From NCBI GenBank assembly GCA_025594325.1, contig JANHCV010000015.1, positions 186,001-250,000 on the forward strand: a DNA stretch of 64,000 bases, in the 5' to 3' direction. This DNA is from Blastocladiella emersonii ATCC 22665. Lineage: Eukaryota > Fungi > Blastocladiomycota. The notes below the pieces were generated by a model. It had not been told where the DNA came from. It saw nothing but the letters and a program-made list of their open reading frames with translations, and ran no database searches. A program made the translations under genes and the position numbers. This document shows, one piece after another, positions 52,061-61,458 of this stretch (its first letter is position 1; each line of letters starts with the position of its first letter).

Positions 52061-53565
52061 ATGAAGCTGCTCAACGCCCTCCTTATCGTCTCGCTGCTGA
52101 GCGCTACCGGCGCACGCGCCGCCGAGGTTGACCGCCGTGGTGCGCATCACACGCGCGCTCGAGCCTTCGCGTAGTTGTGTGCGCTAACGCGCTCCCCACG
52201 CCGCGTACTGTAGCGCCCGTGCAGCCGGGTGCGATCCCCGCGCCCGCGACGTGGGGCACCGCGACCTACTCGTCCAAGACCTTCATCCCGCCGGGCGACG
52301 AGTGGTACTCGTTCAACGCGTGCTACCCGGGCTCCGGCACGCCGTGGACGATCCTGCTCGACCACCCGCACGCGGCGACCTACGACATGGTCGTCGATGT
52401 GGTCGTATCGTATCCCGCGACGGCCGGGTACGACACGCCGCACGCGTACCTGTGGTCCGACGGCAAGTGGGTCGCGCTGACCGAGGCGGCGGAGCCCGTC
52501 AACCTCAACTGCATCGGAGGCCAGATGGTGCGGGCCGTCGCAGGCGCGCAGTGCTGGGCCAACCCCAACGTGCCCAAGCTGTCGGCCACGATCAAGGCCG
52601 GGTCCAAGGCGTTCGCCTTCGGGCCCATCACGGGCACCAAGTGCACCGCCGGCATGTTCCGGTACCGCTTCGTCGAGCCGCCGCCGTACTGCACGTCGAC
52701 GAGCGCGCCCGACTACGTGGTCCCGCGCGACACGGCCGGGGCGGTCGCGACGGCGGCGCTGCCCGTCGCCCAGCTCGCGTGCAACCAGATCGGCGCCGAC
52801 CTCGCGCCCGTCACGTCCAAGAACGCGGTCGACGTCGCCAAGGGTACGCGTGCTGCGAGCCGCTCGTCTTGCGTGATGCGCCGACAGATCGCTGACCGCT
52901 GATGGCGACATGTAGCCGGCATCGATTGCATTGGCCTCGGCAAGCAGGCGCTCGTCGCGAGCTGGGAGGGTAACTCGTACGACCAGCCCGGCCTGCTTCT
53001 CTCGCTGCCGAGCAAGGCTGGCAAGGTACGCTCTCCTCTTGTCCACGGAAAACCACTGCAGACCACCACTCACTACTGCCCTTCACCTTCACTCGCCGCG
53101 TAGTCGCCCTCGGTCAACGTCGCCGACCCCTCGACCCCGCTGCCGCCCATCTGCAAGCTGCGCAAGTCCACCGAGACCGAGTTCGGCCTGGTCGTCGGCG
53201 CCGACTCGCCGGTCCGTGTCGTGGTCCTGTCCGAGGGCGTGGACGCGGCCTCGGCCGCCGCCGTGTGCACGCGCCGCGGGTACTCGCTCGCCGACCTCAA
53301 GTCCGGCTCGGGCTCGGGATCGACGTTCGCCACGGCGTCGGGCGTCACGTACCAGGCGCTTGGCAGCGGCGGCAAGGCGTGGATTCACTCGTACGACGGG
53401 GACGCGTACGCGGGCTCCTGCATCGCCCTCACAGCCGCCGACTCGCCGACCAAGGCCGGCAGCGTCAACGTGCCCGCCGGCGGGTGCACCGGCAAGCTCG
53501 ACGCCGTCGTGTGTCAGACGGCTGCCGCTTCGACCGCCCCGATGCAGCGCCGCAGCGAGCTTTAA
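52061..53565 (+). CDS. Secreted Cys-containing protein with C-terminal C-type-lectin-like module(s), copy A (426 aa). Exons 52061-52139, 52214-52843, 52916-53025, 53104-53565
   Basis: Signal peptide MKLLNALLIVSLLSATGARA followed by a dibasic RR. Repeated pattern A...C...G..LA.L....AW(I/V).S(W/Y).G..Y...C..L...G.VNV...C...L..VVC. Three introns with consistent phases. Confidence 0.75.
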
Positions 53566-54057: not shown

Positions 54058-57000
54058 ATGAAGCTTAGAACAATCTCCGGGATCATCTCAATTATATGGC
54101 TGAACCTTGCTGTCCAAGTCGCCTTCACGGAGACTTCCGGCGAAGCAGCAGCAGCCGAAACGGCTTCCACTGTCAGCAGCCGAGCGCCGACGTCGCCTGC
54201 CATGGCGAGCCTACTCGCGCAGTGCCGTGTGTGCCACCGACGATCCGAAGTCCAGATTGGCATGGTGTCGCACGGTACGCGTCGTTTACTGTCAAGTTTC
54301 CGACGCGTAGCTTACAAGCGACGTGATGTTTAGGCGACTGGAATCTCGACTCGTTTTGGATCCGGTCCAAGAGCGGAATCGTGCGCGCCGCGGAGCTATA
54401 CAATGTCTCGGCGTACCCGCTCAACCCGACCATCTTTGACCCGGCGGACAACGCGATCGCCGTGACCAACGCGGCGGCCAATTTTTCGCTGATCGGCACG
54501 ACCATCGGTACGAGCGGGCGTCGCAGCGATGTGGTCGTACCTGCTGCTAACGCTCGGTCGTGTAGTTGAGATGGCCACCGTCGGTAACGCGGTGCTCAAC
54601 ATTACGCAGAGCAAGCGCGCGGCCGTCGTGGCGTACAACGCCGGCGACAGCCTCATCTCGTCGCTCGGAGTGTGCGTTCGTCTCTCGCAGCTGTCACCCC
54701 CACCCATGCTCACGACCTCGCGTGTAGAATGAACTTTGTGGGCCAGCCCGAGTACACGGCGGCCTTCAAGGTCGGCGTGACGCTCGCGCGCGAGGGCAAG
54801 GTCAAGGCGGCCTGCATCCAGCACGAGGCCGGCAATATTGCGCTGATCGAGCGCTGCAACGGCGTCAACGACGGGATCAAGTCCGTAACGCGTCCGTGTA
54901 CTAACGACACTTCACCACGTCGCACGATCTAACCGCCTGCTTTGTGTAGCCGGAGCTTCAAGCACGGCCATGGCGGTCGACGGCACGTCCATCTCGGCCA
55001 TCGACGCGACCATCAACAACGCGCTCGACACCATCCTCGGGCTCGACGCGATCGTGACGCTCGGCACCGACGTCGCGATGCGCGCGATCCAGGCCGTGCA
55101 GGCTCGCGGCCGTTCCTCGACTATTGGCATCGCCACGTTCGACATTTCCGTCGAGCTCTGCAGCGCCATCGCCCAAGGTAAGGCTCTCTTCGCCATCGAC
55201 CAGCAAGAGTTTATCCAAACCTTCACGACGGTGCAGCTGCTCAAGCTCTACCACATGACGGGCGGCATGCAGCTTGCCACGAAGCTGCTGCTCTCGGGCC
55301 CGTCCGTCGTACGGCTCGCTAACGTGCAGCGCAAGCTGTGCCAGCTCGACCCGACGCGGTCTGGGTGTACAAATCCGAGTCCGAGCGTACGTTACAGCAC
55401 TTCGACAACTCTCGGCCGAGCATTGACCGTGGACGTGTTTGTAGTCCATCACCATCGCGATTGCCGCGACGGGCAGCTGGACGGGCACGGACTCGTTCCA
55501 CCAGCAGGCCAAGTACGGGGCCCTCGCCGCGGCGCGCGAGCACGGCACCGCGCTGCGGTTCATCGACACGAACCTGTTCGACCTCCAGGCGCTCGCTTCG
55601 CTCATCCAGACCACCATCAACGACCGCGTCTCGGCGCTCGTCATCCCCGTCCCGTCGATCGGCGCCGGGCAGAACTTTGCGTCGCTCATCGATGCCGCCG
55701 CCGCGCACACCATCCCCGTCGTGACGTGGGCCACGGGCACGGTGCGCGGGTCCGACCGCGTTCAGAACGGCAGCGCGCTCATGCACATCGGCCAGAACGA
55801 GACAACGAGCGGGATGCTCCTCGGCGCGCGGCTCAACGCGCTCGTCCCGGCCGGGTCGCAGGTGCTGTGCTTGACGCAGGAGCTCGGGAGCGACGACATG
55901 CCGCTCAAGTGCGCGGGGATCCAGGCCGCGCTGAACATGGGCCGCACCGTGGTCGCCGCAGGACTCGGCGGCTCCGCGCTCCCGCTCGCCGTGTCCGTGC
56001 GGAACGTGGTGCAATCCGTCGTCGACATCCAGACGGCGCTTGCGGCGTTCCCGCGGGTCGCGGCCATCGTGTACCCGTCGGCCGAGGCGGCCAAGATGGT
56101 GCTGTCGGCAACGACGAGATCGCTTTCGAGCGTCGTGGTCGCTGGCTACGGCATGAGCTCCGAGGTCGCCGAGAGCATCCTCAGCGGCCGCATTGCGTTC
56201 ACGGTCGACGAGCAGCCGTACCTCCAGGCGTATATGGCCGTCGCGTCGCTGTCGCTGTACCTCACCGACGGGTACATCTTGCAGAACCCACTCCTCGAGA
56301 CGGGCCCGCGCATCATCGACCCGTCGACGCTCGCGACGGCCGTGTGCCGCGCCGACACGACGCGCGACCCGAGCGCCGAGTGCCCGGCGTGCCCGGCCAA
56401 GTGCGGTGCGGCCGGCGTCGCGGGAGGCGGGATCTGCCTCGACTCGGGCGCGTGTGCGTGCAGGCCCGGGTGGCTGCTCGGCCCAGATCACGACTGTACG
56501 GTCCGCGACCCGGGGCTCACGTACATCAGCGCGCAGTCGGGCGTCGCAGTTGCGCTCATGGGCATCACGGGGCTGGCCATGGCGTCGACGCTCGCCGTGA
56601 CCGCGTTCATCGTCGTGTACCGCACCGACCCGACCATCAAGGCGACGTCGTGGGCCATCTCGATCGTCATGCAGGCCGGCGTCCTCGCTGTCCTTACATC
56701 GGTGTTCCTGGCCGTCGGCGAGCCGACACCCGCCGTATGCGCGGCGCGGCCGTTCCTCCTCGCGGTCGGGTTCGCGACGGTTATCGGGTTCCTGGTCGCC
56801 AAGACATGGCGCGTGTACCTCTTGTTCAACACGGTCAAGCTGCGCGGGCGCAAGATCACGGACGTGCAGGTCGTCGCGTGGGGCTGCGCGGTCGCGCTCG
56901 TCAGCGTTACGATCTGGGTCGCGTGGGTGGCAACGGACCCGCCGGTGCCGACCAACATCTTCATTGCCGAGGGCCTCACCAACGTCGTTTGCAAGAGCCG

Positions 57001-58317
57001 CGGCGGGGCTGAGAGCGCGTTCGAGGCGCTGCTCATCGCATATGTGCGTGTTCGCTCGCAGCCGACCGAGATCGTTCACTGACACGCTCGATTGTAGAGC
57101 GTCGTGCTCATCCTCGTCGGCGCCGCGCTGGGTTTCGTGACGCGCACGGTTATCGCGCGGTTCAACGAGTCCCGCCCGAGTACGTTTCATCGAGTCATTT
57201 TCGCCGCGCTGTCCTGATCGCTGACCACGAACATACCCGGATCAAGTCGGCCTCATCATGTATAACCTCATCGCGCTCGCGGCCATCGGCATCCCGCTCG
57301 CCGCCTCGAGCACCTCGAACTTGATGCTGTGGTTCGTCGTGCAGACGGTGGTCACGCTCCTCGGGTGCATCAGCACGCAGCTGCTCCTGTTCGCGCCCAA
57401 GATCATGGCCATCCTGAAGCTCAAAAACCCGTCGCGCGGTGCCGGCGGCGAGAACTCGACGGCGCTCAAGACGCAAACGGCCTCGACCTTTGGCATCGGC
57501 AAGGCCCCCGCGCCTCCCGCGACCATGGGATCGTGGCGCGGCCAGCCGGGCATCCGCAAGCGGACCACCTCGCGTGGGATCTCGGACCCAGGCCTGCACG
57601 ACTCGTCGACCTTCGACACGATGTACCTTCACGCGCCCGCTCGCGTGCTGCGGAGTCGACTCGACTCGCTCACCGCGGTCTGGTTCCCGGCGCTCGTCAC
57701 GTTCATGGGCGATCCGGCGGTGCCCATGGTCGCCGTGTTCGACACGTCGGCGCAGGGCAAGCTCGGGGTCGTGGTCGACCTGTCGCAGGCGCTCGTGTCT
57801 GTGGTCGAGATGGAGCCGGGTACGATCTCCGCGGCGGCAGCGGCGGCGGCGGCGAGCAGCAGTGGCCAGGCGACGTCGGGCAAGGACACGGCCGCGGCCG
57901 CAAGCGGGAGCAGTGGCATGGCGTTCGCCCCGGTCCAAGTCGGTTCGAGTGCCGTCGGCGAGTCGACGGACACGGTCGGGTCGCTCACCACGCAGGTTGC
58001 CGGGATCATCAACTTGCGTACCATGGTACAATCATCTCGCTTTCTCTTTCGGATCGCGACTTCGCTGACGCTACTTGTAGATGGGCCAGGCTGTCTACAT
58101 CCAGTTTTCCAACCCCGCGCAGTTCAACCTGTGGACGGCGCAGCTCACCAAGGCGTGCGGCTTCTCGACGCGACCGTCGCACAGCGGCTCCAAGGACAAG
58201 GACAAGGACAAGGAAAGCGACGGGCCGCACGTCAGCGCCGCCAAGGTCGGTCGGACCCGTCAGTTCAGCGGCGGGCTGGGCGACGGCGCTCCGGGCGTTG
58301 ACAGTATCCGGGAGTGA
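54058..58317 (+). CDS. Class C-type (7tm_3) GPCR with two periplasmic sugar-binding (Peripla_BP_4-like) domains, an EGF-like module and a PH-like cytoplasmic tail (1264 aa). Exons 54058-54274, 54334-54507, 54566-54671, 54728-54891, 54950-55386, 55445-57043, 57098-57179, 57247-58025, 58081-58317
   Basis: Signal peptide. PBP-1: IGMVSHG|DWNLDSFW..G..RAAELYNV, VGQPEY, C.QHEAGNIALIERCNG, FAIDQQEFIQ. PBP-2: DSFH..AKYGA..AAREHG, IGQNETTSG, C...ELG....PLKCAG, FTVDEQPYLQAY. EGF-like CPAKC...GIC...GACAC.PGW. Seven hydrophobic helices with IKATS, AKTWRVY, FNES and LFAPK motifs. Eight introns with phases 1,1,2,1,0,0,1,0 summing to 3795 nt. Confidence 0.88.
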
Positions 58318-58661: not shown

Positions 58662-59756
58662 ATGTCATCGACCACCGCTGCCGCCAGCACCGACCGCCCC
58701 GACGCACACAAGATGCAGTACATGCGCCTCGGCAACACGGGCCTGCAGGTCTCGCGCATCTGCGTCGGCATGATGTCGTACGGGTCGCCCGAGTGGCAGG
58801 CCTGGGTCCTCGACGCCGACAAGTCGCTGCCGCTCATGAAGGCCGCGTGGGACGCCGGCATCAACTTCTTCGATTCCGCCGACGTCTACTCGAACGGCGC
58901 GAGCGAGACGGTCCTGCGCGACTTCATGCGCGAGTACGGCATCAAGCGCAACGAGATCGTCATTGCAACCAAGTGCTACTTCCAGGTCGCCGACTCGCCC
59001 GGCGCCAACACGTTTGCCGGCGCGGCGCCCAAGTACACGCAGGTCAACCAGCGCGGGCTGTCGCGCAAGCACATCTTCGACGCGGTCGACGCGTCGCTTG
59101 CGCGCCTCGGCACCGACTACATTGACCTGTACCAGATCCACCGCTGGGACTACGACACGCCCATTGAGGAGACCATGGAGGCGCTGCACGACCTCGTCAA
59201 GGCCGGCAAGGTCCGCTACATTGGCGCCTCGTCCATGCACGCGTGGCAGTTCGCCAAGGCGCAGGCGGTGGCCGAGCGCAACGGGTGGACCAAGTTCGTC
59301 AGCATGCAGAACCTCGTCAACCTGCTGTACCGCGAGGAGGAGCGCGAGATGCTGCCGCTGTGCCGCGACCAGGGCGTCGGCGTCATCCCGTGGTCGCCGC
59401 TCGCCCGCGGCATCCTGTCGGGCAAGGGCAAGCAGTCCGACTCGGTGCGCGCCCAGACGGACCGCATGCGCCAGGTCATGATGGGCAACGCCTCGGCCGA
59501 GGATGTGGCCGCCGCGACCGACGACCGCGTCCTCGCTGCCCTGCGCAAGGTCGCCGAGGCCCGCGGCGTGCCCATGTCCCAGGTCGCGCTCGCCTGGGTT
59601 CTCGCCAAGCCCGGCGTCACGGCCCCGATCGTCGGCATGAACAAGATCGAGTACCTCCACGACGCGGTCGCCGCCCTCTTGCTCAAGCTCACCGACGACG
59701 AGGTCAAGGCACTCGAGGCGCCCTACTACCCCAAGGTCATCTTCGGTCATTTCTGA
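58662..59756 (+). CDS. Aldo-keto reductase (aryl-alcohol dehydrogenase/Tas-like subfamily), intronless
   Basis: YMRLGNTGLQVSRICVG.MSYG, GINFFDSADVYSNG.SE, IATK, GLSRKHI, LGTDYIDLYQIHRWD, GKVRYIGASSM, SMQN, IPWSPLARG. Confidence 0.93.
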   Translation: MSSTTAAASTDRPDAHKMQYMRLGNTGLQVSRICVGMMSYGSPEWQAWVLDADKSLPLMKAAWDAGINFFDSADVYSNGASETVLRDFMREYGIKRNEIVIATKCYFQVADSPGANTFAGAAPKYTQVNQRGLSRKHIFDAVDASLARLGTDYIDLYQIHRWDYDTPIEETMEALHDLVKAGKVRYIGASSMHAWQFAKAQAVAERNGWTKFVSMQNLVNLLYREEEREMLPLCRDQGVGVIPWSPLARGILSGKGKQSDSVRAQTDRMRQVMMGNASAEDVAAATDDRVLAALRKVAEARGVPMSQVALAWVLAKPGVTAPIVGMNKIEYLHDAVAALLLKLTDDEVKALEAPYYPKVIFGHF

Positions 59757-59969: not shown

Positions 59970-61458
59970 TTACAGCTCGCTGCGGCGCTGCATCGGAGCC
60001 GTCGAAGCGGCCGCCGTCTGGCACACGACAGCGCTGAGCTTGGCCGTGCACCCGCCAGCGGGAACGTTGACGCTGCCAGCCTTGGAGGCCGAATCGGCGG
60101 CCGTGATGGCGACGCACGAACCCGCGTACGAGTCGCCGTCGTACGAGTGGATCCACGCCTTGCCGCCGCTGCCGAGCGCCTGGTACACGATGCCAATGGC
60201 CTTGGTGAAGGTCGCGTCCGAGCCCGAGCCCGACTTGAGGTCAGCGAGCGAGTAGCCGCGGCGCGTGCACACGGCGGCGGCCGAGGCGGCGTCGACGCTG
60301 TCGGCCACGACCACGACGCGGATTGGGGAGTCGGCGCCCACGACCAGGCCGTACTCGGTCTCGCCAGCCTTGCGCAGCTTGCAGATGGGTGGCAACGGGG
60401 TCGACGCGTCGGCAACATTGACGTTGGCCGCCTAAACGTTAAGCAAGGTGAGAGAGTGAGCGGAGGTTGGGAATGCGTCGAGGCGCGCGTACCTTGCCAG
60501 CCTTGCGCGGCAGGGTGAGAAGAAGCCCGGGCTGGCCGTGCGAGTTGCCGTCCCAGCTCGCGACGAGCGCCTGCTTGCCGAGACCAATGCAATCGATGCC
60601 AGCTACTCGCCTTTCTGGTCAGTGATCGTGCCAGGCCAGCGGCGAGGCAAATTCGCGTACCCTTGACCACATCGGCCGCGTTCTTGGACGTGACGGGGGC
60701 GAGGTCGGCGCCGATCTGGTCGCACGCGAGCTGCGCAACAAGCAGCGTGGTCGTAGTGAGTCCACCGGTCTTGTCGCGCGGGACGGCGTAGTCGGGCGCG
60801 CTGGTTGAGGTGCACGCCGACGGAGGCGGGACGATGCGGTAGCGGAACACGCCGGAGATGCAGTTGTTGTCGGGCAGCGGGTAGAGACCGATCTGCTGGG
60901 TGCCGGGCGGAACCGTCACGGAGACCTTAGGCCCCTTTGGGTCGAGCAGACACGCATCGGCAGCATCCGATGGGAGGGGCACCTTCGGATCCGTCCAGCT
61001 GCCAGGAGGGCAAAGTTCGGCGATCACGCTCTCCGTGTCAGTCCGGGCAACCCACTTGCCGGCAACCCACACGAGCGCGTGCGACGGGTCGCGGGTCTGC
61101 GATCCGTCGGAGCGGTATCCAACGGTGACAAACGCGTCAAGGGTCATACCGCGCTCCACCGCAGCAGGCGCGTCGGGTCGGATCGACCAGTATGCGCCCC
61201 CGTGGCAGCTGACAAACGGGTGCCAGATGTTCTCTACGACATGATCCGGCAGCGTGGGATCCGTCGTGAAGCCGGCCCCGATGAAGCGCTCGGGCGCAGG
61301 GATCAGGTCTGACTGCACGGCCGCTACACGCCGTCACGGAGGCGTGAGCGACAGCAGCAAAGTCAGCGTGCGCCGCACATACCGCGACGAGCGGCGTCGG
61401 CGCGTGCACCGGCGGCCCACAGCAGCGACAAGAAGGCAAGTGCGATGAGGATCTGCAT
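59970..61458 (-). CDS. Secreted C-type-lectin-like protein, copy B (436 aa), inverted paralog of 52061-53565. Exons 61458-61383, 61323-60661, 60602-60493, 60431-59970
   Basis: Signal peptide MQILIALAFLSLLWAAGARA plus RR. Same three intron positions and phases as copy A; exons 3 and 4 have identical lengths (110 and 462 nt); near-identical C-terminus ending QTAAASTAPMQRRSEL. Confidence 0.78.

Follow-up and report, generated by a model that had tools for sequence, protein, structure and literature searches.

Structure of the receptor gene

The stretch of DNA analysed here (the window) comprises 64,000 nucleotides of Blastocladiella emersonii ATCC 22665 (contig JANHCV010000015.1, positions 186,001 to 250,000 of the forward strand), and the coordinates of the locus given below are those of the window. 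Positions 54058–58317 of its forward strand hold a gene for a G-protein-coupled receptor (GPCR) of class C in which two sugar-binding-protein units precede the seven-transmembrane (7TM) domain. The pieces of open reading frame (ORF) in this interval lie in three frames and are connected by eight short introns of about 54–59 nt, most of which contain a CTAAC/CTGAC-like branch site. Joining the nine exons at GT-AG junctions (exons 1–3, 54058–54274, 54334–54507 and 54566–54671; exons 4–6, 54728–54891, 54950–55386 and 55445–57043; exons 7–9, 57098–57179, 57247–58025 and 58081–58317) generated a single open frame of 1264 codons plus a stop codon at 58315–58317. The region is GC-rich (57–75%), with a dip in GC content 5′ of position 54058. 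Residues 49–1264 of the spliced model were 100% identical to the GenBank protein H9P43_009592 (P0156) of B. emersonii ATCC 22665, whose gene is deposited on the same contig at positions 54202–58317, and the exon structure is therefore independently supported. The splice junctions used here rest on this deposited model and on an alignment to the orthologues that contains no gaps; an alternative donor of intron 4 (GTACTA at 54898) was rejected, since it would add two residues that occur in no orthologue and not in the deposited protein.

The deposited model begins at the second in-frame ATG, at position 54202 (MASLLAQC...), and lacks a signal peptide, while its open frame continues upstream to an ATG at 54058. 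The sequence between them starts with a signal-peptide-like hydrophobic stretch (54058–54129, MKLRTISGIISIIWLNLAVQVAF...), with a hydropathy peak at residues 5–23. Since the paralogue and all the orthologues present a hydrophobic N-terminus preceding a conserved LLAQCRxCHRRSEV motif, and the frame is the same open one, we take 54058 as the true start, the upstream ATG restoring the signal peptide. A preliminary description of this locus had placed the receptor at 54058–57460; we retained its start, while its end falls just past transmembrane helix 7 and the gene runs 860 bases further. The protein length that it gave (1264 aa) was recovered from the nine-exon splicing, and the proposed order of signal peptide, two periplasmic-binding-protein (PBP) units, EGF-like linker and 7TM domain was confirmed. 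Orthologues were colinear with the model over about 1200 aa, indicating that the N-terminal exons are part of the same gene and not of a separate one.

Identity and fold of the sugar-binding-protein units

The first unit, PBP1, is membrane-distal, spans approximately residues 56–355 (54223–55353) and is split by four introns, while the second, PBP2, is membrane-proximal and spans residues 367–672 (55445–56362). Pfam analysis of H9P43_009592 detected Peripla_BP_4 in two stretches (123 bits) and no match to ANF_receptor or NCD3G. The best match of solved structure was for both units 4RU1, a CUT2 monosaccharide binder, aligned at full length with E = 8.8e-24 for PBP1 and E = 3.1e-24 for PBP2, and the second PDB match for PBP1 was 4IRX, the myo-inositol binder of Caulobacter. 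Among the NCBIfam models, the rhizopine (inosamine) binding protein NF052284 scored best for both units, but its 82.7 and 52.2 bits lie far below the curated cutoff of 420; as the best-scoring named family, it provides a weak lead towards cyclitols only.

The ectodomain was modelled with AlphaFold2 from a 34-sequence alignment. The model had a mean predicted local distance difference test (pLDDT) score of 91.1 and a predicted template modelling (pTM) score of 0.91, and the relative placement of PBP1 and PBP2 is predicted with confidence. When the model was compared with the PDB using Foldseek, almost all of the best 50 matches came from bacteria and were either sugar-binding proteins or sensor domains that share their fold. 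Superposition with VIA-align placed PBP1 on 4RU1 (Z 27.8, root-mean-square deviation (rmsd) 1.6 Å) and PBP2 on the E. coli ribose-binding protein 1DBP (Z 28.9, rmsd 2.5 Å), and none of the top structural matches found with either program was a class C flytrap. Profile scores, E-values and structural comparisons thus agree with the earlier proposal that the heads belong to the bacterial ABC-type sugar-binding proteins (CUT2/Peripla_BP_4) and not to the ANF_receptor/Venus flytrap family.

PBP1 and PBP2 aligned to each other at full length with 25% identity (E = 6e-15) and are therefore homologous, duplication in cis being the simplest origin of the pair, as had been suggested. Signatures of sugar-binding proteins had been attributed to both units, and this was correct for PBP1, whose translation contains VSHG..DSFW, ACIQHEAGNIALIERCNG and FAIDQQEF, while PBP2 presented altered versions only (ATG..DSFH, LCLTQELGSDDMPLKCAG and FTVDEQPYLQAY). 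Compared with the bacterial CUT2 sugar and cyclitol binders (4RU1, which is Acidothermus ACEI_1806, 4IRX and 1DBP/2DRI), the fold is common to all, with an rmsd of 1.6–2.5 Å over 268–282 residues, and PBP1 shares their motif set (HG, DxFW, NAG, GQxE, HExGN, RCxG, TFD and DQQ). In contrast, PBP2 lacks this set, identity is only 28–29%, and the heads, instead of serving an ABC transporter, are fused in one gene to a eukaryotic 7TM receptor.

Linker, transmembrane domain and cytoplasmic tail

PBP2 is followed by a Cys-rich, EGF-like linker (56363–56512), which takes the position held by the nine-cysteine domain in the class C receptors of animals. Its translation contains eight cysteines and a CxCxxGWxxGxxxC motif. 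Four EGF families of Pfam, EGF_Teneurin, EGF_2 and hEGF among them, matched it below threshold, the best being EGF_Teneurin (18.4 bits, cutoff 24.3), and an orthologue reached 24.2 bits against a cutoff of 24.3. Confidence of the AlphaFold2 model was low in this segment.

The 7TM domain (residues 723–985, 56513–57422), which contains the introns 57044–57097 and 57180–57246, matched Pfam 7tm_3 with 153.8 bits (cutoff 33.5) over profile positions 4–251 of 251, and a hydropathy scan of the protein detected one N-terminal hydrophobic stretch and seven transmembrane helices. Class C receptors are characterized by a lysine in transmembrane helix 3 (AKTxR), an FNE element at the start of helix 6 and a PK pair in helix 7. 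The corresponding motifs were all present in the translation (DPTIKATSW, VAKTWRV, RFNESRP and LLFAPK, the last within LLFAPKIM), in agreement with the class C assignment of the preliminary description, which had cited IKATS, AKTWRV, FNES and LFAPK.

The cytoplasmic tail is predicted to form a fold resembling a pleckstrin homology (PH) domain (residues 1047–1214, 57606–58164), which contains an intron (58026–58080) and is interrupted by a disordered Ala/Ser-rich insert of 58 residues (57813–57986). In the AlphaFold2 model, which was based on an alignment of only seven sequences, the tail consisted of seven strands and a C-terminal helix, with a pLDDT of about 90 in the ordered parts. Nearly all of the best 50 PDB matches in Foldseek were PH domains, with a probability of about 1.0, a template modelling (TM) score by target of up to 0.74 and weak E-values (0.008–0.06), while Pfam found no PH domain in H9P43_009592. 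The tail is conserved in the orthologues of Allomyces and other Blastocladiomycota. A metagenomic class C receptor (P0026, locus L006, 1001–3391) presented the same EGF-like stalk and 7tm_3 domain behind an unidentified N-terminal part, and its tail gave a near-threshold Pfam match to PH (23.8 bits, cutoff 25.1). An 'EGF-7TM-PH' chassis may carry different heads.

Conservation of the putative binding clefts and proposed signalling

All PBP units were aligned to one profile and the near-invariant columns of the family were tabulated, namely the H of HG, the W of DxFW, the N of NAG, the R of RCxG, the D of TFD and the first Q of DQQ. Each of these six columns was kept in 43–51 of the 52 single-domain solute-binding proteins (SBPs) and in eight or nine of the nine fungal PBP1 units, while not one was kept in any of the 11 fungal PBP2 units, where the residues were T/Y, H/Y, G/A, K, G and E, respectively. 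In the non-fungal receptors, each column was kept in 11–12 of the 12 D2 units and in 8–11 of the 12 D1 units. The six positions would correspond to N13/F16, D89, R141, D215 and Q235 of the E. coli ribose-binding protein, which we take to be its sugar contacts, and we infer that the six columns are ligand contacts. PBP2 had been described as the more diverged unit, and at these columns the divergence was complete.

The exchanges in PBP2 (R to K, D to G, Q to E and N to G/A) are fixed in both Blastocladiella and Allomyces. Between these genera, identity was 64–69% for PBP2, 49–52% for the 7TM domain, 47–52% for PBP1 and 29–36% for the tail, and the Cys-rich linker was 69–73% identical to that of Allomyces. 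Given its 64–69% identity, PBP2 is not decaying, and it is the slowest-evolving part when set beside the 7TM domain, PBP1 and the tail. The new element is the pattern itself, in which PBP1 of the fungal clade keeps the six columns and PBP2 has exchanged all of them yet stays highly conserved.

Taken together, these results show that the locus encodes an intact, conserved class C GPCR whose sensor consists of two binders of the CUT2 monosaccharide/cyclitol type arranged head to tail, followed by the Cys-rich stalk, the 7TM domain and the PH-like tail, and we consider it probable that PBP1 binds the ligand while PBP2 transmits the signal. In this proposal, a small neutral carbohydrate or polyol would shut the cleft of the distal PBP1, and the closure would be relayed through the tightly packed proximal PBP2 and the rigid stalk, Cys-rich and EGF-like, so that the 7TM domain would activate a heterotrimeric G protein. 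The role of PBP1 as the ligand-binding unit is suggested by its retention of the six columns that are near-invariant in the bacterial family. PBP2 would be a specialized transmission or second-site module instead of a duplicate sugar site, since it has exchanged the six columns for an equally conserved set and evolves the slowest. While the gene structure, the domain identities, the folds, the residue patterns and the distribution are documented by the analysis, the ligand class, the direction of signal flow, the coupling to a G protein and a physiological role in the sensing of nutrients or substrates are what we infer.

Several observations weigh against this proposal. The ligand contacts were assigned from the contacts that we attribute to the ribose-binding protein and from column conservation, not from coordinates; the score with the rhizopine model is far under its cutoff; and the EGF and PH assignments both fall below the Pfam thresholds. 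In addition, the two nearest bacterial homologues that we inspected are orphan genes, with neither ABC partners nor inositol genes, and gene context therefore yields no clue to the ligand. Finally, the very high conservation of PBP2 is just as compatible with this unit acting as the actual sensor of a new ligand. With respect to the surroundings of bacterial homologues, one of them (locus L001, 8001–8999) was located near CYTH/CHAD and CHASE2-guanylate cyclase genes, and the tandem homologue in a Tetrasphaera metagenome-assembled genome (MAG; locus L002, 8001–9908) was the direct upstream neighbour of a gene for an SSF sodium:solute symporter.

The last of the points raised against the proposal leads to a possible, though rather unlikely, alternative, in which the agonist binds to PBP2, whose pocket would have been remodelled and enlarged to accept a non-canonical ligand (for example a charged or larger molecule), and PBP1 is modulatory or serves in assembly. 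Bordetella BvgS (VFT1 and VFT2) and the ionotropic glutamate receptors (a distal amino-terminal domain and a proximal ligand-binding domain) also present two binding folds in series before the membrane domain, with unequal roles, and by analogy their logic would favour the proximal unit as the agonist site. Neither is related to this receptor in sequence. In BvgS the units are type II PBPs and the output is a histidine kinase, while the ionotropic glutamate receptors combine a type I with a type II unit and are ion channels. The higher conservation of PBP2 as compared with PBP1, the fixation of the replacement residues in both genera, the confidently predicted ribose-binding-protein-like fold and the direct junction of PBP2 with the stalk are all consistent with this alternative. 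On the other hand, PBP2 has lost every one of the six columns that hardly vary among sugar binders, and since both units are canonical in the non-fungal relatives, a special ligand of PBP2 would have to be a fungal novelty.

Distribution of the tandem architecture

An exhaustive HMMER search of 1.84 billion representative sequences with exon 6 as the query retrieved 2190 proteins at E ≤ 0.001. Among the best 150 of these 2190 matches and their cluster mates, about 20 representative clusters presented two Peripla_BP_4 (PBP4) units ahead of a 7TM domain of class C. Within the Blastocladiomycota, this architecture was observed in a second Blastocladiella gene (H9P43_003482, 72% identical), in Allomyces macrogynus (AMAG_07598 and AMAG_00123), A. 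javanicus and A. arbusculus, and in Sorochytrium and Catenaria, the Catenaria model being truncated. Outside this phylum it was found in the chytrid Irineochytrium, the amoeba Mayorella, the diatoms Seminavis and Rhizosolenia, and many metagenomic eukaryotes. The whole tandem also superposed with a TM score of 0.76 on another model named 'GPCR family 3' in the AlphaFold database. A word-indexed search with the 7TM region returned two Blastocladiella paralogues only and was uninformative. The architecture is thus widespread, an outcome that the preliminary description had named among those that would refute its reading; in the literature searched, we found no functional description of it.

Tandem PBP4 proteins lacking a 7TM domain were also detected, in a green alga, a diatom, a picozoan and an actinobacterial MAG. 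In the AlphaFold database, an entry named as a guanylate cyclase (A0A1X2GAX9) has a two-unit PBP head (residues 38–586) that superposes on the ectodomain described here, and on this structural comparison the tandem head seems to have been reused with other outputs.

This distribution bears on the role that had been proposed for the receptor, namely guiding swimming zoospores or gametes to substrate or mates by chemotaxis. The zoospores of B. emersonii show chemotaxis and phototaxis, and the organism has expanded families of sensory genes (PMC9730499). Receptors with extracellular binders of small molecules are obvious candidates for such a function. However, the same build is present in the amoeba Mayorella and in diatoms, including the pennate Seminavis, so that the architecture as such is no indication of swimming cells, and the sensing of nutrients for germination, growth or sporulation would fit equally well. 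We therefore regard a chemotactic role as unlikely.

Origin of the tandem

In a tree of 140 PBP units built by maximum likelihood, most of the receptor-borne units (all 21 D2 and 16 of the 19 D1) formed one group apart from the single-domain SBPs of bacterial type (Shimodaira–Hasegawa-like approximate likelihood ratio test, SH-aLRT, 87). Within it, fungal D1 and fungal D2 were separate clades, each of which included a chytrid, and the duplication is therefore ancient and preceded the split between Blastocladiomycota and Chytridiomycota. Peripla_BP_4 is an overwhelmingly bacterial family and PBP4-PBP4 tandems do exist in bacteria, for example in the Tetrasphaera MAG (P0061); in the tree, the bacterial tandems were recovered as sister pairs within the same protein, indicating that they are independent duplications.

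The trees of the 7TM domain had a poorly resolved backbone. The nearest non-orthologous 7TM domains were those of chytrid receptors with ANF heads and of a Calcarisporiella receptor with a PBP_like_2 head, which suggests that heads have been swapped. A single clade of all PBP4-bearing receptors was not rejected by the approximately unbiased (AU) test (p = 0.36), and with these results either one or several fusions of PBP4 and 7TM domains are possible.

A bacterial origin, as initially suggested, is plausible for the PBP fold, but it would be ancient: the nearest single-domain or bacterial SBPs are only 28–32% identical to the receptor units, the PBP region holds five of the eight introns of the gene, and its GC content is host-like, all of which makes recent transfer unlikely. 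Despite the bacterial character of the family, the existence of bacterial tandems and the apparent head swapping, it is hardly credible that the pair was acquired recently from bacteria, possibly already as a tandem, and grafted onto a fungal class C receptor, as this is opposed by the low identity, the separate grouping of the receptor units, the independent origin of the bacterial tandems, the introns and GC content, and the old duplication evidenced by a chytrid in both the D1 and D2 clades.

Comparison with known receptors

Class C receptors are a textbook example of how a binding protein of bacterial type has been joined to a 7TM signaller. With those of animals (mGluR, CaSR, T1R and GABA-B), the receptor described here shares a full-length 7tm_3 domain with IKATS in the first intracellular loop, AKTWR in transmembrane helix 3, FNE and PK, as well as a large bilobed ectodomain of PBP fold before a Cys-rich stalk. 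It differs from them in the type of head, which is a CUT2 Peripla_BP_4 unit and not ANF_receptor/LIVBP, in the presence of two heads per chain instead of one, in an EGF-like stalk in place of the nine-cysteine NCD3G domain, and in the PH-like fold of the tail; GABA-B receptors likewise lack NCD3G. To our knowledge, every class C receptor studied so far has one flytrap of amino-acid type in each chain and functions as a dimer.

The non-canonical class C receptors known from early-diverging fungi and diatoms follow the same theme as the Blastocladiella receptor, a 7tm_3 domain combined with bacterial-type, non-ANF solute-binding heads. Krishnan (2012) described 78 class C receptors in Allomyces with heads of the PBP superfamily (ANF, BMP, LysR_substrate, OpuAC, SBP_bac_1 and PBP_like_2) and the absence of the family from Dikarya, non-ANF heads being already accepted in the class C family in that work (PMC3251606). 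Diatom receptors (Phaeodactylum) with N-termini of ABC sugar-PBP type were reported by Port (2013) (PMC3727952), and class C receptors of gut fungi by Seppala (2016) (PMC5168858), while the Blastocladiella genome paper mentions diversified GPCRs in general terms only (PMC9730499). The heads listed for the early-fungal and diatom receptors are BMP, OpuAC, LysR_substrate, SBP_bac_1, PBP_like_2 and type II SBP. The texts of PMC3251606, PMC3727952 and PMC5168858 name neither Peripla_BP_4, a tandem, a degenerate proximal unit nor a PH-like tail, and contain no functional data; our literature search found no paper joining Peripla_BP_4 with 7tm_3 and no description of the tandem build. Because non-canonical heads in these fungi and in diatoms have been in print since 2012–2013, what is gained here is detail and testability and not a new kind of receptor, through the addition of the tandem heads, the remodelled but conserved PBP2 and the PH-like tail to a published theme.

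The tandem family, with two serial sugar-type flytraps in at least three eukaryotic supergroups, offers a natural experiment on how the closure of a flytrap is passed to a 7TM domain. The fungal receptor, with one canonical and one remodelled unit, is suited to simple binding assays on each of them, and it belongs to the short list of concrete candidate receptors for carbohydrates or polyols in zoosporic fungi, for which we know of no identified chemoreceptor. Going further than the binding and transmitting roles proposed above, the tandem of zoosporic fungi might be a built-in unequal pair, in which a ligand-binding PBP1 is combined with a remodelled PBP2 that does not bind sugar and acts as an obligatory transducer. 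We consider this stronger version quite improbable; if true, the pair would be the single-chain counterpart of the division of labour between GB1 and GB2 of the GABA-B receptor, and a class C receptor could signal without the inter-subunit dimer of flytraps that, as far as we know, all studied members of the class need.

Genes adjacent to the receptor

An aldo-keto reductase gene (Aldo_ket_red, 58662–59756) lies immediately downstream of the receptor gene on the same strand, with no sign of conserved linkage between the two. A conserved 'lectin-GPCR-reductase' cluster was considered and rejected, as the locus of the paralogue (L005) contains no aldo-keto reductase gene and shows only noise-level similarity to the flanking genes of the window. 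An ORF of 623 aa on the reverse strand (55319–57190), which overlaps exon 6, has a high content of Arg, Asp and Gly and lacks support, was discarded as a by-product of the high GC content and not a gene. The genes flanking the receptor and reductase genes (52061–53565 on the forward strand and 59970–61458 on the reverse strand), for which Pfam returned no match, are inverted paralogues, up to 82% identical in their C-terminal part as determined by tblastx.

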